Shown one piece after another: positions 26,201-43,872 of a DNA stretch of 64,000 bases; within the stretch, counting starts at the first letter, position 1, and every line of letters begins with the position of its first letter. The position numbers and the translations under genes are program-made. Source of the stretch: Kudoa neothunni. Taxonomy: Eukaryota > Animalia > Cnidaria. The notes beneath the pieces were generated by a model. That model was given only the letters and a program-made list of their open reading frames with translations. It did no database searches and was not told the origin of the DNA. The stretch lies in contig OZ199839.1 in NCBI GenBank assembly GCA_964304625.1, forward strand, positions 2,684,519 through 2,748,518, written 5' to 3'.

Positions 26201-26415
26201 TTCAACCTACTTAAAACAACACTAATAATTATTTGAAGCCTGAAAATATTTTTTTTAAAATAAATATCGAATAACTAAAAATTAGTTATATCGCCTTAGG
26301 AAATAGTTTCAATATCGTGGTAATCAATTCAATGTGATTATAAATAAAAATGGGAATACTTTTACTCGGAAGAATTCGGCAATTCTCATCAAAAGTCGCC
26401 CACATTTGAACGTAC

Positions 26416-28323
26416 ATGAGTGGTGGAAAAATCAAAGTAAATACCTCAGTTCCAGTGTTTTTATGGAAACTTTGGGTGCTGCTGAGTGACAATCAAAACA
26501 ATTCATATATTCGTTGGTCAGAAGTGTGTTTTAGTGTTGTGTTTGGAATCGGGATTGATTAATACATAAAAATATTTAGAATGGTGACAGTTTTATTGTA
26601 ATGGATGTTTTGAATTTTTCCAAGAAGATCCTACCCCAATACTTTAAACATAATAATTTTGCTAGTTTTGTACGACAATTAAATCTATGTAAGTGATCTT
26701 TTATTTCAGCTGTTACTGCTTCTGTTTGTGTGCTTTCGGACACATGTATGTAATCGATTGAAATTAGATGGCTTTCGAAAAGTGATCGATGTCCAACAAG
26801 GAATATTGAGTAGTGCTGAACCGGAGCAATTTGAGTTTCAACATTCTCTGTTTAAACGAGGTAGACAGGATTTGATTGAACAAATCAAACGTCGGGTAAT
26901 TTCAACTATATTTTTGTTGAGCCAACGTATGTACTCAAATTTTTCGATATAGCTCGGCGGAAATAATAAAAAAGCAAAAGTAGAAAATTTTGAGACCACA
27001 TGCAGCCAAGTTCAAACTGTAGCTGAATCTCATCGCGAAATCTCCTCCCAATTGTCACTATTAAAAGAGTATCGCTGTTTTTGTTGGTCTCTTGTATTCT
27101 GAACAATTTTACATTTAGTCAGAACGAAAGAATATGGTCAGAATTGATTATGTTACGAGAACAACATGATCGACAGTCAAAAGTTTTAGATCGAGTATCC
27201 ACGGCTATTTCCTATTCATATGTTTATTGTTTACGTTATGTCTAATCAGAATTTGTTTTAGTTGATCAATTTTTTCGCTTCTGTCTTCAGACCATACAAT
27301 AGTGGACTTTCTCACACACTTGTTAATAACTTTATTCAAGATGGTGATAATTTGTCCAATTACAATAACTTTATATCAACTCTAACCAATGTCCCAACTA
27401 CCGACGATATCATCAACAATACCAATAGTAGTAGTAGTAACAACAACAACAGTCACAATGGTCAAAACAATACAAATATTAAACCATTCGAAAATCTATC
27501 CAATTTTAATTTTAACAATAATGCGTACTTAATATTTTACTTCAATTCCCATTGTGCAAATAATTAAATGTCTTTTAGATTGGCTGCTCTCACGTTCAAT
27601 ATGCCTTCTATCGAACAACAACAGCAACAACAACCTTTACAAACCCATCAATTACAACAGCATGATAATAGTGCACTTCTAGATGATGTATTTTTATTTG
27701 GGTCTTTATAAGGATATATGTGGTGATATTTTTTCCAGCGATTTCAACCCCTTAGTAGTACTGAAAATAGTTTTCAAGAGTTGCCTCTTGCAATTCCACC
27801 TGGTCCCTTAGATTCCGATGTATTTGGGACTATTGAAAGTGGCAACAAAGAGTTGAGGACCCTTGACAAACTTGAGTAAATTAAAAATTTTTAATAATGT
27901 TATTAATTGACTTTTTCCCTCTAGAAATAATCCCAACTACATACCATCCCTGTCGCACAGCCTATCAGATAATTTTCTACTACAACCAAATCTGGATAAC
28001 GTAGCCATCACCTTCCCAAACTTTAATCCCCTGAGTGCTAATACCAATAAAAGTAATTTGTATGGGTTGGCAGCTGTACCAACTGAATCCATTCAACGTC
28101 CATCCACATCAGCCGCATCCTCATCCAACAGTGGAATCGGTGTAAATGACAAATTGTATTTTTTTCATTCTCCAAACAAATTTTTTATCCGCTCTTTAGC
28201 CAAACATTAGTTGATAATTGTAGAGCTTTGGATCAAGAACTATCCACCATACAAGAATACCTTAAACTTCAAAATATTGAAGGATTTCAAATTGATGATA
28301 GTCATTTGGATGACAAATTATAA
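26416..28323 (+). CDS. HSF1: Heat shock transcription factor
   Basis: DBD motifs [35 protein letters not shown] and [14 protein letters not shown] segment [21 protein letters not shown]- and Q-rich linkers, and an HR-C-like [12 protein letters not shown]. Short GT-AG introns; TAA at 28321-28323. Confidence 0.9.
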
Positions 28324-29886
28324 TATAATCGTCTATTAATATTTATTTTTATCTTAAACGTTGATTTCTGATCCAATATTGCAGTATAAAATGAATGTCA
28401 CGACGTTCTACACCATTCAATGCTTGGGAGTTGGATCGCTCATTTGAAAATGTTTATGCTTGTTTTATAATAATTTTCACCTGTTAGGAAATATTTTTGT
28501 TTTATGTTTTCATTATAAATGATTTTGGGATTGTTTTTTCGTTACCTACCAATTTTTTACGTAGAAAGTTGGGATGCTTATTAAACATTCTTTCGGTTGT
28601 TAATTTTGAATGGTCGATGATGCTTGTTGCGCACTATCGTAGATGGAGTAAATTCTGAGTGTAAAATAGTAAGATTTTGTGATAGTTTGAAATTATAAAA
28701 CGTGTTAAGCTAGTCAGTATGGTTATAGACAGTCTAAAATGGAATAACTTAATTTTACATAATCATTTAACTCTCTATGAATTTCTTGGGGTTGAAAATG
28801 TATAACACCGCTTCTATTTATTTGATTATTGTCATTGGCCAGGGGTTGGCGACCCGCTAAGATTGCTGGATCGGATAGTCACGCTAAACTAGAAGGCAGG
28901 TTAATATATACATAAATGCTTTAGCTATAATGAGTTTTTCACTAAAATACTAATATATCTAGTTCATCCGCAAATGATAATTTATTTCCATCTTTAACTG
29001 ATAAAGAGCCCCATTTAACTTAATTATTGTCCAAAAAAGACAAGAAAAATAGTTAAAACGTTCAATTAATTATTAAATCTCTTTTTTGTGAAGGGATGCC
29101 GAGTTGTCTTTATATGTGTTAGGGGGTGCGAGAACTAAAATGAATCGGGAAGCGCTGGAATAAAGGTGTTTTATTATTTTAGAAATGTAAGAGAACACGA
29201 ATACACAATAAAAATATTTAACATTTGAAGAAATTGTTAATAAAAATTGATGATTTCAGATAACATAGCCTCTGTCTTCTTTAATTGACTTTGACTGCAA
29301 AATTTTCTTTAAACTTTAAAATTTTTTTCATGTTTAAGTAATAGATATTATGATTATAAAAAATAAACCAACAAATGATATGTGAAAGCAATAAGTCAAT
29401 TTTTAGGAGTGCTTAACTTGTCCGCAAGAAGTGATAAAATTTATCTTTAGTGAATAGAAGGAATTTATTGTATAAACAATAAAATAAATACCAGTAGTTG
29501 ATTATTAAGAGAGATTATGGTGTTATTTCTTATGTAAAATTATTATAAGATGGAGTCCTATTTTCGATGAAGCATCGTAATTTGATATTAGTAATACTAG
29601 CGTAGCAAATTGAGCCAATTAATGAGAAATTCAAAAAATGCACACACGAGCACATATTACTCTCTATGACTAAATAAAATCTCTCCATCCCACAGACAAA
29701 TAGCTTGTCTCAATTCTAACAGATAATCATGATTTATTGTATATTATAAATGTAGAAAAGAGGGTATAATTTGGAACAGAGAATAAATTTTTTAAAATAT
29801 CCTTATTAAATAAAACATGAAAAATTCATTTTATTTCAAACAATTATTTTTCAGATGATGTTTTCACAACATAAAACTTTAAAATG

Positions 29887-31381
29887 TTATAAATAACCAA
29901 ACGTGAGGAAGCCTGTGTGCCCAGATATTTCCTTATATGAGCAGGTCAGAATTTTTTCCGGTTGCTCCTGCATATCATCCTGCAAACATAATTATACAGA
30001 GCCATTAAAACACATAAAATACACTAAATTTCGTTCTTTTTTGAGGCATAGTTTCATTATCGTTGTCGTCATTGGTGGAGCTCGACTACAACATCAACCT
30101 ATCAACAAATCACATTCAAATGATAATTACGGTATTTTTGGATAAATGTCTCTCAAAAAAATATGGTTTTTCCAAACACTCAATAGTCTTTATTTCTACC
30201 AAATAAAGTTTACCCAACATTTAAAAAGATGCGTTACTTTTGAATTTGAATAATTCCAGCTGTTCAACGGTTCTTTGAACCTGTTCAATGCACGGAGAAA
30301 ACGAGCAAAAACTCCCACCCGATTTCTTTTTGTGAGTTAGCAAAAACAGCAAAAATATACACCAAACTCACTTTAAGAATATTGAACGCGTGTTTAACAG
30401 CCAAAAAAGGTTTTGGTAGGTCGAAAATAACTAAAAATTCTTACACAACTTTTAGAATGTTCAAAATCATACCCGCATCGACACCATTTTCCAATGAGTT
30501 TTCTTCGTCAATTTTAAATCCATCATTACACACATCAACATGATAAACATTGACTATATCTTGGTAGCCATGATCGTTAAATTCGCATCTAAAAATAGTT
30601 CAAACTCCTTATTTTCATGTCATTACATTAAATAAAAATTGCTTTCATTCCACCGTATAAACTATAAAAACTTAACTCGACCTTAAAAATTGTAAAAATA
30701 ATGAACTATGATTACGCATTAAAACTGTTCATTTCCTCTCATAAAGAAAAAATTTAACATTGACTTAACAGTTGATTCTCAGTCTCAGTGCGTAAATTTA
30801 CTTGGCTTGTTCATAACGCAGTTCATTAAATTCAAATGTATGCAATTTTCCAATTGGTGCAATTGCATTAGCTAAAGAATGCGACAACGAACCACTTCCA
30901 GTTCCTATAGAATTATTGTTATGAACTACACAATTCGTACACATTACCAGATTCCACTACAATTGAACCAGGCTTTAGATTTAAAAAGAAAACAATCTGG
31001 CTGATATTAGTAGAATAAATTATTTGAGTTCGATGAGAAAGAGATTTCATCCACAAATAGGGGCTTGGAAACAATGCATAAACGTGACCTTTTCGCTTGC
31101 ACGTAGAAAATATCTATGTAAACATGTTTTATTACATAATTACCAAATTAATCTAAACAAAACTTTTGAGCCATATTGTTTGCCAATAATGTCATTGTGA
31201 CTAAATGAGCCGAATTTCATTGAAGTAACAGCATTTTTTGTGACTGTAATGGCCAAGTACTGGGGTTGCTATTGTTTTATTTAATTTATGGATAAGTTAA
31301 AATGGCGAAGGAAAAATTCACCGCAAGCAGCACAACGACGTTTCCCTCCTCAATAATTTCTGTTCTCTCTGAAAATTTCAT
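29887..31381 (-). CDS. TRMT61A: tRNA (adenine58-N1)-methyltransferase catalytic subunit (Trm61/GCD14)
   Basis: Spliced translation gives [58 protein letters not shown] and [11 protein letters not shown] at 31381, TAA at 29889-29887. All exons are too short for the ORF track. Confidence 0.93.
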
Positions 31382-33035
31382 GTGTCCAATGTGTGTGCAC
31401 GCATCCATGCACTAATATTTTCGTTACCTAAAATCTTTAATCTCTTCGATCCCAATTAGTTTTACCTATGAAAAAATATATATGCTTAAATTATAATTAT
31501 CTTTTACTACATTCGATAATCGATTTTGCACACTTTTTGTGAAGTTATTTGATTATAACTCCAAATGTTTCCAATGTTTATATAAGCAAATATATTAAAC
31601 CTGGGGTAATTTCGGTTCAATCAATAGACTGTAAATGATTTAAACTGCGTAGCAAAAATCAAACAACGTTTCGATTTTTCACGCTTTATTCCAGCCACTC
31701 CGTTGATCAATGTAGCACCATTCGCAGAAAAATTAAAAATTTAACAGTAAGCGAAGATAAAAATACAACAAAATTCGAAGGAAAATACAAGGTAATAAAA
31801 TACTTCGAAAATCTTACATAAATAAACGTTAAGATAGTTACTATGAGATATTTCAACATAACAAATATAGCAATCCTAAATGACCTCCTCGAAAGAAGAA
31901 CTAAATTTTCTTTCTAATTTAAAAAAGTTTAGATCGTTTCCAAACATTGTTAGAATTGGAAATTGATTTGTATATGTCAAAATTGACACAAATCAAAATT
32001 AGTGATTTTTCCAAAATTCGAAACTAAGAATCGCTTGATTTTTTGTCTGTTATAGAATTTATATTCGTTTATATTATTTCAATAAAAAAACATCAGTTTT
32101 TCTCCTAAGTTCCAAAAGAGGATATACACACTGAACCCTCCAAACCTGTGGGAGGGGGGTCCATTTGACACCAACGCAATGCCTGAATAATCTAAAGCTT
32201 ATCTGTTAATCAAATAGGTTAATAACGAGTAGTATTTCTCTAAACGCTGTATATTTTTTTAATATTTGTTCAAAAATCGTAAGGAACTTTTATCCAGCTT
32301 AAAATAACAATTACTAATATCACGTCGTTTTCAGGATCCAATTGACCCCACGACTCTCTTTTATGTAAGGAATGTAAAAATTATTTCATATAATTTATGA
32401 AATTTTGGAATAATTCTATCGATTAAATAAATAACAAAATACGATACAAATGATGATCACCTGCTAGCGCGACATCGATATAAGCATATCATCCCTGTCT
32501 GGATACAGCCATAGCCCCTCAGATTATGATGACTCTTTACACTGATTATTCAACCTATGAAAACTCTCCATTATTTTTCATAGTTTCGTCTTATAGGTGG
32601 CATTAAAAAAACACATGTGATAACTATTTTATGAAATAATAGTTGTTTGCAAGCATTTCATGTTTCATGATAATATTACATCGCGTTGTTTATAAGAAGA
32701 TAAATTAACATAAAGTAGTTGAACTATTGGCTTAAATAAAAAACACAGAACTAAACCTATAAATACAATCATAATCCAAAGTAACGTACCAACATGTAGT
32801 GTTGTGCTAACGCAAGCAAGACATAGCATTAATAATTGACCGTTTATGCACAATTCAAACGATTAATTTTCTTCATATTTTTAATGTCGATATTAACTTT
32901 TATTTAGGACAATTTTAGGAAATAAAAACGTGTAATACACTTCTACACCGTTTTTATTTGGATTATATAGCTTTTTCAGCTACTACGATGGTACATAATG
33001 CATGCTGTTCTTTATGAATCCGTATTGAATGGAAA

Positions 33036-35024
33036 ATTATCTGTTTACATTTTAAAATATGGCGTGATTACAAATATCTTTAAAAATGTCAGTTTAAAAA
33101 AATCAACAAGAATGCAGCTTCGATCATTATCGTAGCGTGCGCACCATTTTGCGCGTTCTTTTTTTATGTTGTATTTCTCTAAGTTTCCACATATATGTAA
33201 CTTTGAGACTAGCAGTATCTCCAACCTAGTCGTATTATAGTATTTAAGTGTAAAAACCATATTTGACTCGGTAGTAATAGATTTAGATAATTTGGTTGAA
33301 TTTAAATTAACTTTTATCCATAAAGAATTCTAAATATTAAAAGTTTCGTTGATTGGAAATGTCAAAACCAATTAACTTTAGTTTATATAATTTTCTTAGT
33401 GGTTTATATCTTTAATGGTACGAGAAATTGTGACATTACTATGACTATCATAATATCTCTCATATTTGTGATACATTTATAATTATAAGAATTTCTTTTG
33501 CATAAGGAGGTTATATAATGATCTCCAGCTATAGTCGAATGTCAACATATTAAAAATGAAACATTCTGTTTTAAGATTTCGTCGCCCAAAACAACCAACA
33601 AGTGGTACACGGCTGTTGTAAAATTTTTAGCAAGTTATATTACATGGAAATAAAAAAGTGATCGGCTCACAAAAATATATATTGCTTAGTAATATATTTA
33701 CATTTTTGAATGCAACATCCCCTTACGTTTGGGCGACCTTTTTTTTTATTTATTTGCATATTTAAGAGTTAATCTGATTAGATTGAAGAGTTGAATTTGA
33801 GGAAACCTAAGTTGTTTAAATATTTTGGTATCCATACTTGAAAAATTGCTGGAGCATACGTTTAACGCTTCTATACGAATAATTCGAAGCACATACATGT
33901 CGATATCAATAAACACGCGGTGCTTTAACTACTGCTATATACTCAATACAAATATTAATAGCCATTATTTATGACTATTTTAAAAATAATTATTGATAGG
34001 TCCTATTGTTTATTTTATTAAATTTGCAACAGAACAATTATTCGCCAAATACTTTATACTCTATCAACTTATATTTGACCGAATAAAAATTACGGAATCC
34101 CCAGATGATACACAAAGATTCTAATAGTTATATTACAAATAATGAATCTTGGACTAATTTATTGTTGGTAAACAGAGGTTCTTTAGAGAAACAAGAGCCT
34201 ACCAACCAAGAAGTGCGGTACGGATAAATTCTCGCTAATCTCCTATTAAGTCGAAGTATGTATAAAACTTACGTATACATGGCTTAAAAATCAATTACAA
34301 AAAATTTATATATATAACTAAGTAAAATAGATTAATATGCATATAATAGACCATTTTTCTTGAAATTCTATAGGAATAAATATGCGGATTATGAAATAAA
34401 TATAATCTCTAAGGCATATTTTTTAGATTCGAAAAAAAATTAGTTTCTATACTTACTTTTTAACCTTATAGAGGCATTCCTGGAACAGTCAAGAAGTCAA
34501 TAGTTCAGTTTCGGAGTAACGCGAAAAATACTGAAATTGGGGTCCCTAATGGACCCCGCATCGGACAGGGAGGGTGAATAAGTTTAGCAAGGTTTTTTGA
34601 TCTAGAAGCAGCTTGTAAAACTGGCGCTGTGACTTAAATTCTACCATTACTAAGTTTCATTCGGTAACATGTTTCAGAAACCTTTTAAACATAACTCGCT
34701 AATTCATCTCTGATCAAAATTTTTCACATTAATAATTAAAATCACAAAAACTATATTTAACACCAAAAATGTAAAACTAAAGTAGAGGTCTATAGATAAT
34801 TCTAATTATATTACAAAATGTAATTAAATTGAATATAATAATAATAATAATCTCAAAGTTGCGCATATATGAGGAAACTTAGGGAAATACAGCATAAAAA
34901 AGAACGCGCAATGTTGTTCGCACGCTACGATAATGGCCGAAGCTGCATTTTTGTTGATTTTTTAAACTGATATTTTTCAAGATATTTGTGATCACTCCAT
35001 ATTTAAAAAATGTAAACAGATGAT
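33036..35024. repeat. ~170-bp inverted repeat pair (33036-33208 / 34851-35024)
   Basis: For example, GCAGCTTCGATCATTATCGTAGCGTGCG matches the reverse complement of CGCACGCTACGATAATGGCCGAAGCTGC. Similarity runs along both arms. Confidence 0.8.
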
Positions 35025-35260
35025 TTATTATAAAAACGGAAGGTTTGTACACGCGCAAAAGAACGAATTTTTGGAGGCAGATACTCCCGCATTACCGAAA
35101 AATTGTTCTATGCAATTTATAAACTAAAAGTTAATAAAACTAGTCAATTTTAATAATTAATTAATTAATTAACGATTACCTTACATATTGTATATTGAGT
35201 TACTTGTAACGCTATATAAGTAATTTACCTTTCCAAATATTTTATTAGGGTTAATTAACT

Positions 35261-35263
<3 letters not shown>

Positions 35264-35295
<32 letters not shown>
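35264..35295. repeat. (TA)n microsatellite
   Basis: Direct TA run. Similar runs occur at about 13564-13583 and 61478-61501. Confidence 0.9.
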
Positions 35296-35299
<4 letters not shown>

Positions 35300-35765
35300 A
35301 CAGCTATAGGAACTAACTTTTTTCCAATGTATACGTAGAAAAAAAAACAGTTCGAATCATCCGATACAATCAGAAGATATCGATTCTAAAGTATTCTTAG
35401 ATTTTTTCCTTATTCATTCGATATAATTATTTTTTACTAAAAAATGCGAACAAATATGATTATAAAAACTAAAATAAACAATAAAAAAGTGGGACCTATT
35501 CGACTCCAAAAACGACGTGGTGTATTGGCGATTTTGACGTGCTTGGAGGGTTAAATACTACGATCGGAAACTAATTTTTCACAATTTTTGCATCTTCCGT
35601 AAGGAAATACTCAGAATCAGTTGCATACTGTAAAATGACTACAATATGAATCAAATATTTGACTCGAAAATGCGCAATTATTTGAATTATACACAACAGC
35701 AAAATAAAGCCCACGTTATTTAATTTATTTAACAATATATAAAACTACATAATATTCTACAAATT

Positions 35766-38657
35766 CTACATGTTATCGAGGGTTTCTGTGATGCGAGAAG
35801 AAATATCTTTGCCGGGAACAACTTCTACAATAAATACCAATGAAGGAATTTGATAAAGTGAATGGAATATTTGGATTACCTTGGTTGAAATGGGCGGCAG
35901 TACGTTTGCGTATATTGCTGATAGAGGTGGAATCATTAGCCCATTCGAGAACCAATCTTCTTCCGTACAAATGAGTACTGTATCTCATGCACTCAAAACA
36001 ATACTAAAACAATAATTAGAACAATATCACAATAGTTGGAAGATATACCTTGGCATCTTCCATAGTCAAAAATTCCACAAAAGCGAAACCCCTATGTTGA
36101 TTTTTCAGAGCTGAATTTGTCGTAGAGAGTTTCTGGGGTAGACGTACATTTTTTACATTTCCATAGGTTCTAACATAACAGTTAGCCAAAACAAAATCGC
36201 TTATAAGATACTTGAACAACTCCATCACATCATTTCTAGTGGCTTCAAATGGAATATTTCTGACAAGGATTTTAGGAGCATCTCCCTCATCAGTTTGGGT
36301 GGTTGCAGAAGCGTCATTGCTTAACATGGCTGTTCTAAATCCATTAATATTGAATTGATTAAATAACTCAACTTAGTTAGTAAGTTACTTAGGGACAATT
36401 GTTCTATCGGATAGTTTCATCTCTATGGGACTCTCATCGATTGAGCACCCCTATTTGAGTGAATCAAAAACAACAAAAAATCATAGATTGAAGCAATTAG
36501 AGGTTCACCTGTAGTGTCTTAACGCATTGTTTCGCATCGGCCGCATTGCCGAATTCAATGAATCCATAACCAAGAGATTCATTCAAATTGTTGGGGTTTT
36601 TGCGAGCCAATGTTACACCTACCACTCCAGCCACCTCTTCCACGCACTAAAGAATTAAAACAACTTCTCATCAACATCCATTATCAAACTGATTATTGAC
36701 CTTTTTGATAGTTTCTTCGGTGGTAGAAGGATTGAGATTTTTCACAAAAACAACACAACCTGAAACGGGTGTAACTTGGGGTGGATTAACGGAGGTAGAC
36801 TCATGATTGCTAGTTGTAGAAGGTTGTTGTTTGGTGGACAGTGCTTCTTTCGGAGCCCATTCCAAATACAGCGGAGTAAATCTAAACTGAAGGAACCTCA
36901 ATATTTTGACTTGTATCATTAGAATTACTCTAGTGAACGCAAGTTTATTAAATGCTAGCTTGGCGACATTCGAGTCTTCAAATTTGATAATAGCTGTCAC
37001 ACCATAAGGTGGAACAATAACTCTAGGTTTGATCACCATTTTCGATTCGTCATTGGAGTTCATTTTTGAAAGTATAAATTCCATGAGTTGGGCTGAGGTG
37101 ACATTCTCAGGTAGATTTTTGGCCAATAAAACACAATCACTCTTTTCGTTGTTATCAGCCTACCAACAATAGATTGATCTAATTATCGGACATTCCAGTG
37201 ATTCTTACTTGTCCGAATGAATCCAAATTCACACCATTAGATTCAAGGAAATGTTTGGTTTCATTCACAAGCGCGGTTTCACCAGCAGCAATAGATACTG
37301 CTGGATTATTGGCAAAAGATGGATCCAACAATAGTTGTTCTTTTGTAACGCCCAGTCGTTTCGATAGAATATTCGCGACTGTGTTCTGATTGATAAACAG
37401 TGTGTTCCAAGTGTGTGTCATATTGGCACCTTCTTTCTTCAGGCGTTTCAGTTTTTTCAGTTTGTAGGAGTTAGTGGAACCTGATACTGAAGCATTAACA
37501 AAGTCATCTACTTCGTCTGATTTGGCGGGAACCAATCGAAGCAATCTTCCTTTAAAAATAAAGTTGTTCAATTGATTGAAAGCTGTCACAGCGTTTTCCG
37601 GCAACATATATGTCACAAACGCACAACCGATGGGCTTGGATGTGTCTTTATGGGTGGGCATATTTATATCAACGACAGGACCATAATTTTCAAAAAGTTG
37701 TTTAATTTCAGCCGAATCACACACATAGGGAAGATTGGTCACAAACAACCTACCAGTATCCAACAGTGTTTGTTCACATATTCCTTCATCATTTGGACCG
37801 GTGATATAACGGGGTTGTTTAGTAACTTTCGATCGGTTGGATTCAAGTATTTTCACAGTGTTACCCTTGAGAACTTTACCAGACAATTTGACCGCCTTTG
37901 TAAGGTCGGTTTCGTTGGAAAAATCTGCATAAGCTACGCAGGTTTTCTTTCGTTCACCAACCGGCAAAATTCGAATATCCAACACATCTAAACCCTGGAA
38001 AAATTTCAACAATCTATTCAATTTTATATTTGGTCTAAGATTGGATAGTTTGGCAGTGTACAGAATTTCTGTGGTGGATTGGTCAGCAACTTCTGCAACT
38101 GCTTCGCAATGCTCTTCGTTGACATCGGTTGGTGGCTCAATAGGTTTAACACCGTTCAATAACATATATTCGTTAAATTGATCTCGATCTTCAGCACTAA
38201 TACCACAACTTTCCAAAATCATGGTTTCATGTTTCGAAAGTTGTTTAGTTTTCGAGTTTTTGTTAGATTCAGTTTGATTATTACTAGATGGGGAAATGTC
38301 TTTGTTTTTAAACTCTTTGATGATTTGAATTCTCTCAATACGATCTTTTTCACTTTTCAAATAGGCAGAACTTGTTTTCGAATATCTACTCCAAGGTCGC
38401 TCAAGGGTTTGGTCGTTAACTGACCTAGCAAACTCGACCACTATTTTACAGGTGTCAATATAGGTTTGATTCATTTTGGTGACGGCGTTTTGAGCTTCAT
38501 CTTCGTTTGAAAACCCTACAAACGCTATTCTCCTGAAAACATCCCCTTGAGCGTAAATCATTCGTGTGTCCGTGATAGTTCCGTAAACGGAAAACAATTG
38601 ATTTAAACGTTCTTTATTAATATATTTCGGAAGGTTTTTGACAATAACTCTACTCAT
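35766..38657 (-). CDS. RBM19: RNA-binding motif protein 19 / Mrd1 (multi-RRM pre-rRNA processing factor)
   Basis: MSRVIVKNLP start, RPWSRYS, GRLFVTNLPY, HTWNTLF, PLYLEWAP, KILVRNIPFEA, HRGFAFVEF and STHLYGRRLVLEWA. Short introns; TAG at 35768-35766. Confidence 0.95.
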
Positions 38658-39071
38658 CTTGAAGGGAAGCAATCTAAAACATAATTAAAATTATACGAGA
38701 TGAAAATAATTTTATTAAATTTGATTAGTTAAAGAATTAAATTACTCTTATACAAAGATAATTATGCGATAAATTAGAGAAGAGGGAAGCACGGCCACAA
38801 TGATGCGAACTTAAACGACACGTCTTATTGTATAAAACATGGGATTCCGATGATTAATGATTGATTAAAATTCCAACAAACTTCATTTATTTGGGTCTTC
38901 TATAATGAATTGTAATATACTAATTTACATAAAATTTAATAGAAATATGATCAATTTGATTATATAGTAGAATGAGGTTATAATGTTAAGGTGGAGGAAT
39001 TTGGTGGATTAAGTTGTAATAAGTGAATGAACACGGGTGTTCGTTCCACTAGCTAATTCTAACTAGTTTGA

Positions 39072-40557
39072 ATGTTGGCGCCCTTTAGACATAGACACAG
39101 ATATTTGTGTTCGATGTGAGAATGGTTTTAATTTTTCGGAAATAATTTAATTGTAGCAATGCTGTCGCCAACCGTTTCAAAAATGTAGGAATAATGATAT
39201 TGACAAGTGATCTTGGTTCGAAAGAAGTGTCGAGACTTCGAGTTTTGAAGAATTTGGTGAGATATGCAGATTATGATGAACTATGGCTGTTCAAGTGGGT
39301 CGATTATTCTTCCATACTTCAAATCAATAGCTGGATTGATATATTCAATCTAGATTCAAATTGTATCTTGAGAAACTACTGCTAGCTCAACGAATGAAAA
39401 ACATGGAAAAGGCACTCGAAGGCATTCCATCTATTTACGATCCTCAAGAAAAACTTATTGGCCAAGTTTTACACAAAATAAACACAAATTATCCCAATAT
39501 CAAGTTCACTTTTTACAAAAAGACCATTAGTTCTGCTAAAGAAGTTTTCGACACTATGGATCAGATTTTGAGGTGGAATTGTTTATTATTAGTGACTTTG
39601 GTCTAACTCAGTTGATCTCCTGTTAGTGATAGAGTGGACCATTTGGTGACGTTTCCTATACGACCAACCTACACATGTAGCGAATGGTCCAGAGAATTTT
39701 TCGATATAGCTTCCTATATCCGAGCAAACAAACAAAAAATCAACTTGACAATGAGTTGTGTTCAACCTTATCGACTGCGAAAAGATTACACTCAGCTAAT
39801 GGCTAATACCATTGAGAAGGCACTGAAATCGCTGAAACAAGTTAAGCAAATGGATTATGTGGTTCTCTTTTTGGCACCGTTTGTCAAATTGCAAGTAGAC
39901 ATTACAGCTATTGTCATCCTTTCAATTATTCTCAAGGAAATCAAACATGGGGATTTGAGTTATTTGAATTATATGGCGATGGCTGATACCATTATGTCGA
40001 AAGTCAATCTACCCAATCATTATTTGGTTACTTGGAATCTCAATGTATTAATACTAGTGTCGAGTTGATGTAAAAATGTTGTCTACCTGCAGGAGAATAA
40101 TGAAGACAATTTCCTAATGCCAAACACTTTCACCGCTTTGCGTCATCTGGTTCGAAATCAAAAGAAAAAGGCCTTTCTATTGGTGCCCCTTGGCAATATC
40201 TTTGATGGTAGACTAATGAGATATGAATATGATCTGGATATGACGGTCATCATAAAAAAAATTGTATTAGGAAAGTTTTATGATTAATTTTTTTAATCCA
40301 AATACAGGAACCTCATGTTAACCTTTCAAAGTTGGTGCCTCTTGATAGGAATCCTGAAATGATTAATGTACTATTGTGAGTTTTAGTAGAGATTTGCAGA
40401 GCTTGTGTAGGTATTCTACAAGATTTTGTGTGACCATTTGGACAATCACACTCAAAACTATCCCTGGTATTTGTTCGAAAAAGACCCCGACTGTGTTCAT
40501 CAAAGTTGCAGAGAAACGCGAGCCATTCTGTCCCAATTTTTCTCGAAACCAAATTAA
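39072..40557 (+). CDS. FECH: Ferrochelatase orthologue lacking the catalytic residues (candidate pseudoenzyme), 8 exons, 384 aa
   Basis: Exons 39072-39115, 39157-39294, 39354-39572, 39627-39894, 39937-40044, 40093-40263, 40308-40367 and 40411-40557 splice into an uninterrupted ORF. Blocks collinear with animal FECH: VGIMIL, FPIRPTYTCS, LMANTIEKAL, VVLFLAP...HGD, YLVTW, LMPNT, FLLVP...D...YEYD, NPEM and PDCVHQSCRETR. Confidence 0.85.
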
Positions 40558-40703
40558 ACGTTTTAATTTTCTGAATAATTGTATATGTTTATTTTTAATT
40601 AAAATCTATTGACTTTTTTTATATTTATGCCAGTTAAACATTATATGCTAGTAATTATATTGATATTACAATTATTTTAATATTTTTCTGAAAAGTATAA
40701 ATA

Positions 40704-42152
40704 CAGTAGGTAACCGATTTTACGTACTGTTAATTTTTCTTCTCTTATATATAATTATTAGAGTCAAAACTATTTCTAAAAATTATGAAAGTTTATTTCA
40801 TGTAATGCAAATTTAATGAGAAAAAAGATTTATAACGAATATTTTTATATAAATAGGGATTATCGATTTTAAGTAACTTTTTGTCTCCAACTCTAATTTT
40901 TAAAATCCTTTGTTTTAATGTATTACGCCAATGATTACATTTTAAATAATTTAGATATAATGAAAAGTTTATTATTTTTCCATTTTTTTAAAATTTCGGG
41001 ATGAAAGCTGGTAAATCTTTTACATCATGTGATTTTGATCTCCTACCTATTTCTGCCATGAAAATTCCAGAAATAATAATAATATCTAATTTATTTCCTC
41101 ACGTAAAATAAGTAGGGGTTCATTCAAAAGAAAAATTATGAAAAAAGGATCAAATAATAATTTTTCTGCTATACTTTATAAATGATTTATACATTAGAGC
41201 TAAGAAACCCGATTTATTATAGACGATTAAATATGTAAATAATTAATAAAGGAGTTCCATTCAACAAATTTTTTTATTTTTTGTAGACTTTATGATTAAA
41301 TGTCCCGTCCTAATTTAAAAATGATTAATTTTCTTGGGTGGCCATGTATGCAATAAAAACTGTTACCATAACTAGTAGAACAAATTAAATGCTATTGCTG
41401 AAAAATTTTCTACCGAGCTTTTTATACAATTTATATTTAATATATTGTTCAATCATCAAAACAATGTCGAATTATTTTAATAGGTCCAAATTCTCAAAGA
41501 TAAATTCTAATTTACGTGTGGAATTCAATTCACGCCTAGAAAAGACATCTAAATGATTTATGAGCTAATTTTATATGTCCATTTCTGATAATTGTTCAGA
41601 TCGTCCTTTGATTTGTCATCGCAAGACTTCACGATTTCTTAATGTCAATAAAAATTTCCCAATTCAATTTGAGTAGAATAAGGAAGCGAGAGTGATGATG
41701 AAACATCTAAAATATACCTAATTTGTTAAAATAGTAATTTCAAATATATTGTTGACAATTTATATGTATGTCTCTATGACTCAACTTTTAACTATCAAAT
41801 TAAATTATATAACATCATTCTTGTATTTTTCAACAAATTATCGACTACCTCTCAATGAACGAATAATTAATTTTCAAAGTCCAACTAACTACAAAATTAT
41901 TTCGATTAAAAATCACACTTTTGAAAATGGTAACGATCTAAATGCATAGTCACTAGTTTTTATTCTAATTATATTGAAAAGATAAAAATTGTTCTTAAAC
42001 TTAATAATTGTGAACCTTATTATATTACTTCAATACAAAATATTTTAATTGTCTGTACACACATCAAGAAAGTACTTAAAATCTGTTAGTGATGCATTTT
42101 CAGTAACTTTTCTCTGGTCCCTAAAGGATTACGGAAAACCGATTACCTACTG
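40704..42152. mobile_element. Tc1/mariner(pogo)-type non-autonomous element (MITE)
   Basis: 23-bp TIRs CAGTAGGTAACCGATTTTACGTA / TACGGAAAACCGATTACCTACTG with TA on both sides. A second copy lies in V-ATPase intron 10. Confidence 0.85.
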
Positions 42153-42417
42153 TATCACAGTTTGAGTCTATCCTTGTAATATTTTAAATATTGAGTCAAA
42201 TATACATATATATTATTTTCGAAGAAATTAATTTTAATTCCTATAATACAATGACTTTTTTTTTTGTTTTCATACGCAATAATGAGATCAAAATAAGTAC
42301 GAAAAATCCAACTAAATCACTGAATATGGCATATGCGCACGCACAGATATTCAAAACAAATTTTTCTTATAGAGTTGTATTTCGGGCACAGCAATTAGAA
42401 TATTTCATTTTTACTGA

Positions 42418-43872
42418 ATGCGTCTTTATTCTTTGCCACTTTTAAGTCATCTAAAATATTTTCGAGTGGGGTTTGGTGATTGATTAGCAATAGGCCTGAT
42501 TTTAATGTAGAATGTCTCGACAAAATCAAAATATGATGATGGAAAAACATTATTGGATTTTATAGAGTTACCTAAAGCAACTAAGGGTAGTGGTGAAATT
42601 ATTGTGCCGTTTCAAACAGATACAGCTGCGCCAAAGTAGTTCATTGAGTAATACTAAATGAATAAATGAGTAGAAAATATCAAAATTTACCGTTGTGGCT
42701 GAAAACCGAAATACCACTAGGCGAGAAATATTTCAATATCAAGTCCCAGCTGAAAGGCCTTGGGCTTGCTACTGTCTGTCAAGAAGCAAAGTGCCCTAAT
42801 ATTGGCGAATGTTGGGGTGGCAAAGGCGGGGCTATTTCCACAGCAACTATCATGGTGAGACCACTGTATTTTGATGATGTTTATGAATGAGAAATGAGTA
42901 GATAATGGGTGATACTTGTACAAGAGGATGCAGATTTTGCTCGGTAAAAACTGCTCGCCATCCAAAACCCTTAGATGAAAACGAACCAATTAACACCGCA
43001 AAAGCTATCGCTAGCTGGAATGTTGATTATATAGTGATTACGTCGGTGGATCGTGATGATTTGGAGGACTTTGGTGCTAATCATTTCGCTGAGACTGTTA
43101 AACAAATTAATAAAATGTATTATTTTTATAAATCAGTCTCGATGTAGTTTGAGAGTTCGTGATTATAACCCAAATTTTTTTAAAGAGGACTTAATTAAAA
43201 TTTACTATTTCCTTTAGGAAACCAGATATTTTAATCGAATGTCTCACTCCTGATTTCTCAGGCAGAGTAGACCTGTTGAAAACTGTTGTCGAATCTGGAA
43301 TGGACGTATTTGCACATAACATCGAAACTGTGGAACGTTTGCAGAGATTAGCTCGAGATCCTAGAGCCAACTATAAACAATCAATGTCAGTGCTAGAAAA
43401 CGCCAAACTTATCCGGCCTAATGTCATTACAAAATCTTCCATTATGGTAGGGATGGGTGAAACATCAGACGAAGTGATACAAACGATGACTGGTACCATA
43501 ATGGTTAATTTGATGAAATAAATCTTGTTAGATCTGAGAAACGCTGGTGTAGATTGCATTACAATAGGACAGTATATGCGTCCCACGAAACGACACCTTC
43601 AGGTGCAACAATACGTTCATCCTGAGTTGTTTGAATTGTGGAAATTGAAAGGAGATGAACTGGGGTTCAAATATACTGCTAGTGGTCCTCTTGTGAGGTC
43701 CTCTTATAGAGCTGGTAATTTTAGTGATTTAGCGTTTGTCTTTATGTTTATTAATTCAATTCAATTCAATTCGATCTAATTAATTATTTATTTATTTATT
43801 TATTTAGGTGAGTTTTACATCAAAAATATTGTGAAAAATAATCAGAACAACTTTAAACAATCTCCATCCTAA
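42418..43872 (+). CDS. LIAS: Mitochondrial lipoyl synthase (radical SAM)
   Basis: Presequence-like start [25 protein letters not shown], auxiliary cluster [12 protein letters not shown], radical [31 protein letters not shown] and [12 protein letters not shown] at 43870-43872. Confidence 0.96.

Follow-up and report, generated by a model that had tools for sequence, protein, structure and literature searches.

A putative non-catalytic ferrochelatase, apparently maintained by purifying selection alongside a predicted active copy, in Kudoa neothunni

The DNA that we have analysed is a stretch of 64,000 nucleotides of Kudoa neothunni, a myxozoan fish parasite and relative of jellyfish (contig OZ199839.1), which we refer to as "the window". 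The gene that is located at positions 39072-40557 of the window, which we refer to as "pseudo-FECH" after ferrochelatase (FECH), occupies the forward strand and consists of eight exons, separated by seven GT-AG introns of 41-59 nt (Table 1); its coding sequence of 1155 nt is open throughout and specifies 384 residues followed by a stop codon, and this model has been rebuilt from coordinates as it had been claimed in an earlier note on the same DNA. The gene is arranged head-to-head with an RBM19-like gene, the interval between the two being probably a shared bidirectional promoter, and the same arrangement occurs in the orthologous contig L023, which is described below. On the other side of pseudo-FECH, an AT-rich element of ~1.45 kb is flanked by TA and bounded by terminal inverted repeats of 26 nt (88% complementary), and related contigs pile up over its left end; this element is probably a non-autonomous Tc1/mariner-like transposon. 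A gene that resembles the gene of lipoyl synthase (LIAS), a mitochondrial Fe-S enzyme, is located two kb downstream; this name derives from inspection of its open reading frames.

Table 1. Features of the pseudo-FECH locus, in window coordinates; residue numbers are those of human FECH.
Feature	Position	Strand	Description
RBM19-like multi-RRM gene, first exon	37179..38657	-	Head-to-head neighbour; named by inspection
Intergenic interval	38658..39071		Probable shared bidirectional promoter
Exon 1	39072..39115	+	Start codon; basic, acid-free, species-variable N-terminus, mitochondrial presequence-like
Exon 2	39157..39294	+	First strand; T-x-D-L in place of NMGGP; beginning of upper lip region (human 90-115)
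Exon 3	39354..39572	+	Arg in Arg115 column; Tyr123, Ser130-Pro131 and Arg164-Tyr165 lost
Exon 4	39627..39894	+	Pfam Ferrochelatase match
Codon at Cys196	39676..39678	+	Cys kept
Codon of extra Cys	39757..39759	+	Invariant across three species
Codon at His263	39877..39879	+	CCG, Pro
Intron 4	39895..39936	+	42 nt; keeps the frame and lacks a stop in K. neothunni only
Exon 5	39937..40044	+	108 nt; Gly273-Asp274 kept; Gln302 lost
Codon at Trp301	40033..40035	+	Trp kept
Exon 6	40093..40263	+	171 nt; rebuilt active site; most conserved exon
Codon at Phe337	40195..40197	+	AAT, Asn
Codon at His341	40207..40209	+	GGT, Gly
Codon at Glu343	40213..40215	+	CTA, Leu
Exon 7	40308..40367	+	60 nt
Exon 8	40411..40557	+	C-terminal extension; D-P-D-C-x4-C; stop codon
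Codon at Cys403	40483..40485	+	Asp
Tc1/mariner-like element (probable)	40701..42155		AT-rich; terminal inverted repeats
LIAS-like gene	42666..43779

Over positions 36800-40763, the assembly agrees letter for letter with a contig of short reads from a further sequencing run of this sample, so the substitutions that are described below are not errors of the assembly. The retention of intron 4 has been considered and rejected: the orthologous introns either shift the frame or contain a stop codon, and the structure model is of low confidence at this point, so intron 4 is regarded as spliced. The N-terminus has the character of a presequence that had been proposed for it, being free of Asp and Glu and containing 4-5 Arg or Lys within the first 25 residues in all three orthologues that we have compared, with only 1 of the 15 positions of exon 1 being invariant among them. 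The database searches and the folding were conducted exon by exon, and the joined protein, built from the coordinates, was scored in scripts only.

The relationship of pseudo-FECH with the ferrochelatases is recognised by independent types of comparison. Exon 4 matches PF00762 with an E-value of 1.4e-5 and 24.7 bits, slightly below the 27-bit cut-off for a query that is a single exon; the joined protein matches a profile of 78 bacterial ferrochelatases with an E-value of 1.6e-18 over residues 109-349, and an intact paralogue from the same genome with an E-value of 8e-15. The profile of exon 4 aligns to residues 182-262 of human FECH, stopping one residue short of His263, and the Atlas features of this exon are all ferrochelatase. 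The structure model of exons 4-5 (pLDDT 80.7, low only across the in-frame intron) has ferrochelatases as its sole matches (TM 0.61-0.71), a result that is biased by the bacterial FECH rows in the alignment, as an alignment of orthologues only has given a pLDDT of 51. The ferrochelatase fold is thus obtained from Pfam, from the profile and from the structure model alike, as the earlier note had anticipated.

The active site has been replaced to a large extent. The position of His263 is occupied by Pro in all three species, while the paralogue has His there, as do 100% of the 78 bacterial sequences; at the pi-helix, His341 is replaced with Gly, Glu343 with Leu, and Phe337 with Asn or Ser, where the numbering of exon 6 is anchored to the structure PDB ID:7ctc_A through the alignment of the paralogue. 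In K. neothunni, the codons of these four replacements are located where they had previously been placed, and the motifs NMGGP and GFRY, also named as lost, are both absent on alignment. Among the residues at the porphyrin and the top of the pocket (Arg115, Tyr123, Ser130, Asn75, Met76, Arg164 and Tyr191), Arg115 alone aligns as kept, with Arg in all three species, an assignment that depends on the weaker, N-terminal part of the alignment. The pseudo-FECH orthologues retain 13-16 of 54 family-invariant positions, 16 in K. neothunni, where the 54 columns are those conserved in at least 90% of the 78 bacterial sequences, a set that was selected by means of one exon of the active copy, so that conservation is inflated within that exon. 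In exon 6, where FECH has its metal-sensitive loop and its pi-helix (PMC9133952), an acidic sequence substitutes for the loop of Gly306, Pro307 and Trp310, and two new, invariant Arg occur at the pi-helix; Leu311, Pro313, Thr315, Asp340 and Tyr346 are kept, next to the lost Phe337, His341 and Glu343.

The residues of the dimer and of the Fe-S cluster have changed less. Position 301 is Trp in K. neothunni and Phe in the other two species, and position 311 is Leu in all three; three of the four cluster cysteines (196, 406 and 411) are invariant, while Asp has replaced Cys403 throughout, so that pseudo-FECH, judged from its residues, falls outside the four-cysteine, [2Fe-2S] type of animal FECH. 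The exchange of Cys403 with Asp is said to abolish the cluster of human FECH, and Asp-ligated [2Fe-2S] sites occur in other proteins. Every variant of His263 that has been studied is inactive (PMC9133952), and pseudo-FECH is probably a non-catalytic protein of the ferrochelatase fold.

The search of exons 4-5 against 1.84 billion representatives has returned two relatives, whose contigs, L022 (SRR33849685, 406 residues) and L023 (SRR31175926, 374 residues), contain full genes with open frames; their introns are located as in K. neothunni except for the first, and one extra intron occurs in L022. At this point (L022:705-930), ~32 low-complexity residues are inserted ahead of the strand that runs up to position 263, with splice sites that are a best guess. 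Contig L023 is collinear with the window from 26.4 to 40.6 kb, including the RBM19-like gene, and its copy of the gene is therefore a true orthologue, the species being related to K. neothunni and probably a further member of Kudoa; the order of at least five genes is kept between L023:1-7631 and positions 26400-40600 of the window, with 14 kb fitting into 7.6 kb of 21% GC. The profile search with exon 4, which was word-based and limited in length, so that a blank from it means little, has returned the same two orthologues and nothing more. An exon of the active FECH, used as the query, has not returned orthologues from the species of L022 and L023.

The three pseudo-FECH orthologues are 45-59% identical, and they have Pro at His263, Gly at His341, Leu at Glu343 and Asp at Cys403 in common. 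With pS at 0.69-0.75, synonymous sites are nearly saturated; NG86, applied where dS could be measured, has given a dN/dS ratio of 0.15-0.16 and codon ML one of 0.06-0.07, estimates whose exact value is unreliable at such dS but whose direction holds; a ratio of 1 is rejected by codon ML (2dlnL about 278). For the same species pair, pN is 0.34 in pseudo-FECH and 0.30 in the adjacent RBM19-like gene. Taken as a comparison of sequences, these values indicate that pseudo-FECH is a conserved pseudoenzyme under purifying selection, and they agree with the view of the earlier note, for which a dN/dS comparison across related species had been proposed, that the gene is not a decaying pseudogene. That pseudo-FECH is decaying, is an artefact of the assembly or is a chelatase still active through other residues is hardly credible: the frames have stayed open in three species, the reads agree with the assembly, and hidden activity would have to be reconciled with the inactive His263 variants and with the small number of family-invariant residues left. 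What could be held in favour of decay is that a transcript has not been seen, as one RNA run has zero reads on either pseudo-FECH or its housekeeping neighbour. No RNA run contains K. neothunni, and the RNA reads that map to the parasite were too few for annotation (Weber et al., PMC12239612).

The constraint is unevenly distributed. In exon 6, 35 of the 57 positions are invariant, against 101 of 312 elsewhere (Fisher p 5e-5), and 37 family-invariant columns are lost in every one of the three species, 16 of them by replacement with one and the same residue. In a quick tree, the stem has ~10 changes per site and the tips 0.2-0.8, with outgroups that are bacterial only, so that the long branch of the dead clade cannot be placed. 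The pattern is a burst of change that was followed by renewed constraint, rather than decay. It also bears on the possibility of true neofunctionalisation, in which the fold would have been co-opted for a task other than heme, either as a structural subunit of another mitochondrial complex or through a rebuilt cleft that has acquired another ligand or chemistry. Such a task would fit the long stem, the shared replacements and a cleft that combines the acidic loop and the two new Arg with an invariant His and Cys; it would also fit the finding that Pfam, the PDB and the Atlas all fail to recognise the most constrained exon as ferrochelatase, the word-based, length-limited search with exon 6 having given no match in a set of 5.8 billion proteins, the JGI metagenomes, the PDB or the Atlas. 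We nevertheless consider neofunctionalisation unlikely, as similarity to any other family has not been found, and the conservation of the dimer residues and of the cluster cysteines is more simply explained by an assembly that resembles FECH.

The genome that we have examined amounts to 40.26 Mb, is assembled in 4 contigs, including one of 12.04 Mb, and has a GC content of ~30%; it corresponds in these statistics to the published assembly of 40.2 Mb, with a scaffold N50 of 12.0 Mb, a GC content of 30.41%, introns of 49 nt, and three chromosomes plus a mitochondrial contig (Weber et al., PMC12239612). A second FECH is located on the same chromosome, 6.5 Mb from pseudo-FECH, at C2:9.22 Mb (about 9.2197-9.2213 Mb; L007:3225-4830); its ten exons encode NMGAP, His263, Trp310, Phe337, His341, Glu343 and all four cluster cysteines, 47 of the 54 near-invariant family positions are kept, and its residues thus mark it as the catalytically intact, presumably active copy. 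Several family-invariant residues are replaced in this copy (Gly78 with Ala, Pro192 with Gln, Ala262 with Gly, Pro275 with Thr and Pro313 with Ala). No third FECH-like copy has been found in the genome.

The two copies are 20-22% identical, and six of the seven introns of pseudo-FECH match the second FECH in position and phase, with exons of 108, 171 and 60 nt being common to both, so both copies descend from the intron-bearing animal gene. The vertical inheritance that had been proposed for pseudo-FECH is thus borne out, as are the exons of 108 and 60 nt on which it had partly been based; the intron positions had also been likened to those of human FECH. The designation of pseudo-FECH as an orthologue, on the other hand, has to be replaced with that of a duplicate, i.e. 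a paralogue of the intact gene.

Upstream of FECH, six of the seven enzymes of heme synthesis are found or probably found: ALAS, ALAD, HMBS, UROD and CPOX are present, and a divergent, probable PPOX gives a weak match at C3:9.59 Mb. Two other matches of TIGR00562 were rejected as PPOX by inspection, the best one (C1:1.87 Mb) resembling a gene of the polyamine-oxidase type and the third resembling ETF dehydrogenase. The search with PF02602, conducted exon by exon, has given no candidate for UROS, a fast-evolving family that can be missed in this way; the gap corresponds either to a very divergent gene or to a replacement. In Sphaerospora molnari, another myxozoan, the pathway is likewise near-complete, with the step of UROS (EC 4.2.1.75) being absent from the transcriptome and reported from the genome (PMC11792419). 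It is therefore very improbable that K. neothunni is a heme auxotroph with pseudo-FECH as its sole relic of FECH, as the earlier note had inferred; the UROS gap and the weak PPOX match could be read in this way, but the intact FECH and the five clear upstream enzymes cannot, and an intact FECH with its pathway had been named beforehand as the case that would weaken auxotrophy. From the non-catalytic mitochondrial role that had been proposed in the same context, the non-catalytic part and, probably, the mitochondrial part are supported, while its connection with a loss of heme synthesis is not.

The reading that we prefer, at a probability of roughly 0.45, is that pseudo-FECH has a non-catalytic role as a partner, either of the active FECH or of the heme metabolon. 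The gene would have arisen by an old duplication of animal FECH and lost its chelatase activity, after which its active site would have been rebuilt and the protein fixed by selection in a non-catalytic form. The protein would be imported into mitochondria and located, like FECH, at the matrix face of the inner membrane, where it may still dimerise through Trp301, Leu311 and the C-terminal extension, serving as a structural or regulatory partner, i.e. as the dead half of a heterodimer, similar to a prozyme, or as the scaffold half of a heme metabolon. The site of three Cys and one Asp may hold a metal or an Fe-S cluster, as a stabiliser of the dimer or as a sensor of iron or redox state. FECH is an obligate dimer, whose formation in the human enzyme requires Trp301 and Leu311 (PMC9133952), and a hub for ABCB7, ABCB10, mitoferrin, PPOX, ALAS and MICOS (PMC7140478, PMC6717564, PMC9133952); in trypanosomes, the pairing of an active enzyme with a dead paralogue is an established arrangement (PMC5201418, PMC3663545). 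A more specific form of the partner reading, in which the homodimer has given way to an obligate heterodimer, made up of one catalytic and one dead subunit, the dead one bearing the rebuilt cleft and a Cys3-Asp metal site by which heme output is regulated, is put forward tentatively and is somewhat doubtful. The active FECH has drifted to Tyr301, Phe311 and Ala313, and Pro192, Ala262 and Pro313, which it has lost, are kept in all three dead copies; this pattern is a weak hint of complementary loss, or division of labour, between the two proteins. Several points speak against a partner: the acidic loop that faces Leu311, unlike that of FECH, might just as well prevent pseudo-FECH from pairing with the active enzyme; the Asp at position 403 is the exchange that reportedly destroys the human cluster; and C. 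elegans keeps its pseudoferrochelatase without an active FECH, so pseudoferrochelatases need no active partner.

The last point belongs to the main rival of the partner reading, in which pseudo-FECH would be a homodimer that carries on an ancestral side job of FECH independently of the active enzyme, as an adaptor of ABCB7/ABCB10, mitoferrin or MICOS, as a carrier of porphyrin or heme, or as a sensor of iron or Fe-S clusters. The ferrochelatase-like protein of nematodes (FeCL), which would be kept for this very job, is present in all nematodes examined, whether they have an active FECH or not (PMC5633385, bioRxiv 10.1101/236539), and ABCB7 binds residues 90-115 of FECH (PMC6717564), a region of which 9 of the 20 matching positions are invariant across the three pseudo-FECH orthologues. 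The invariance of the three cluster cysteines would also be expected, and the apparent conservation of Arg115 can be set beside the human variant E343K, which binds porphyrin without turnover (PMC9133952). The loss of the pocket residues Tyr123, Ser130, Met76, Trp310 and Phe337, however, makes the binding of porphyrin doubtful, and the strongest constraint falls on new sequence, not on the inherited surface of FECH; an independent role of this kind is possible, but we would not expect it.

The partner reading, like its main rival, concerns what FECH does besides catalysis. As one protein, mammalian FECH, serves the mitochondrial heme metabolon both as an enzyme and as a hub, it is difficult to tell its two roles apart; what its [2Fe-2S] cluster does has yet to be defined (PMC8529089). 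In Kudoa, where an active copy and a dead but conserved copy occur with the pathway present, catalysis, dimer assembly, the cluster and the binding of partners could be assigned by the expression of two genes, and the conserved dead copy points to a non-enzymatic job of FECH that is separable from catalysis. The Kudoa pair is no evidence of a heme-auxotrophic cnidarian. If the heterodimer were real, two independent animal lineages would, together with nematode FeCL, have preserved the same non-catalytic function of FECH.

In comparison with the mitochondrial FECH of animals (PpfC, PF00762, EC 4.98.1.1), pseudo-FECH is alike in fold, length, presequence-like start and exon layout, and it has the same residues at Cys196, Cys406, Cys411, Trp301, Leu311, Gly273-Asp274, Pro313, Asp340, Tyr346 and, probably, Arg115; it differs at His263, His341, Glu343, Phe337, Asn75, Met76, Arg164, Tyr191, Gln302, Trp310, Tyr123 and Ser130, which are all replaced, and at Cys403, where it has Asp. 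Judged by these residues, it lies outside the active ferrochelatases of EC 4.98.1.1.

Pseudoferrochelatases themselves are already known, the term having been applied to fecl-1 of C. elegans (PMC9133952), and nematode FeCL lacks the active site and has no assigned function (PMC5633385, PMC9133952, bioRxiv 10.1101/236539). FeCL and the Kudoa protein are both of the animal FECH fold without His263 and conserved across species, and filarial FeCL, like the Kudoa copy, coexists with an active ferrochelatase; in nematodes, however, the upstream pathway is missing and the active enzyme is of bacterial origin, whereas Kudoa has kept the pathway and a vertically inherited active FECH that shares introns with its dead copy. 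No FeCL sequence was returned by the search of exons 4-5 or by the profile search of exon 4, and pseudo-FECH, compared with FeCL by description only, probably arose independently, so that Kudoa would provide a second case to be set beside the unexplained FeCL. Eleven duplicate ferrochelatases without the catalytic His, found beside an active enzyme as in Kudoa, have been set aside as dysfunctional (Weerth et al. 2021, PMC8529089); these came without a test of selection, whereas the Kudoa copy is demonstrably conserved across species. The prozymes of trypanosomatids, i.e. the AdoMetDC prozyme and the dead deoxyhypusine synthase (PMC5201418, PMC3663545), are likewise conserved, dead copies of a duplicated, oligomeric enzyme of a parasite; their folds are different, and the heteromer and its activation are proven there, while they are inferred only for Kudoa. 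Our search of the literature has found no report of a ferrochelatase paralogue in myxozoans or of a pseudoferrochelatase in Myxozoa or Cnidaria; what sets Kudoa apart is that the dead copy coexists with an active FECH and a heme pathway that are both native, and that selection on this copy is shown.
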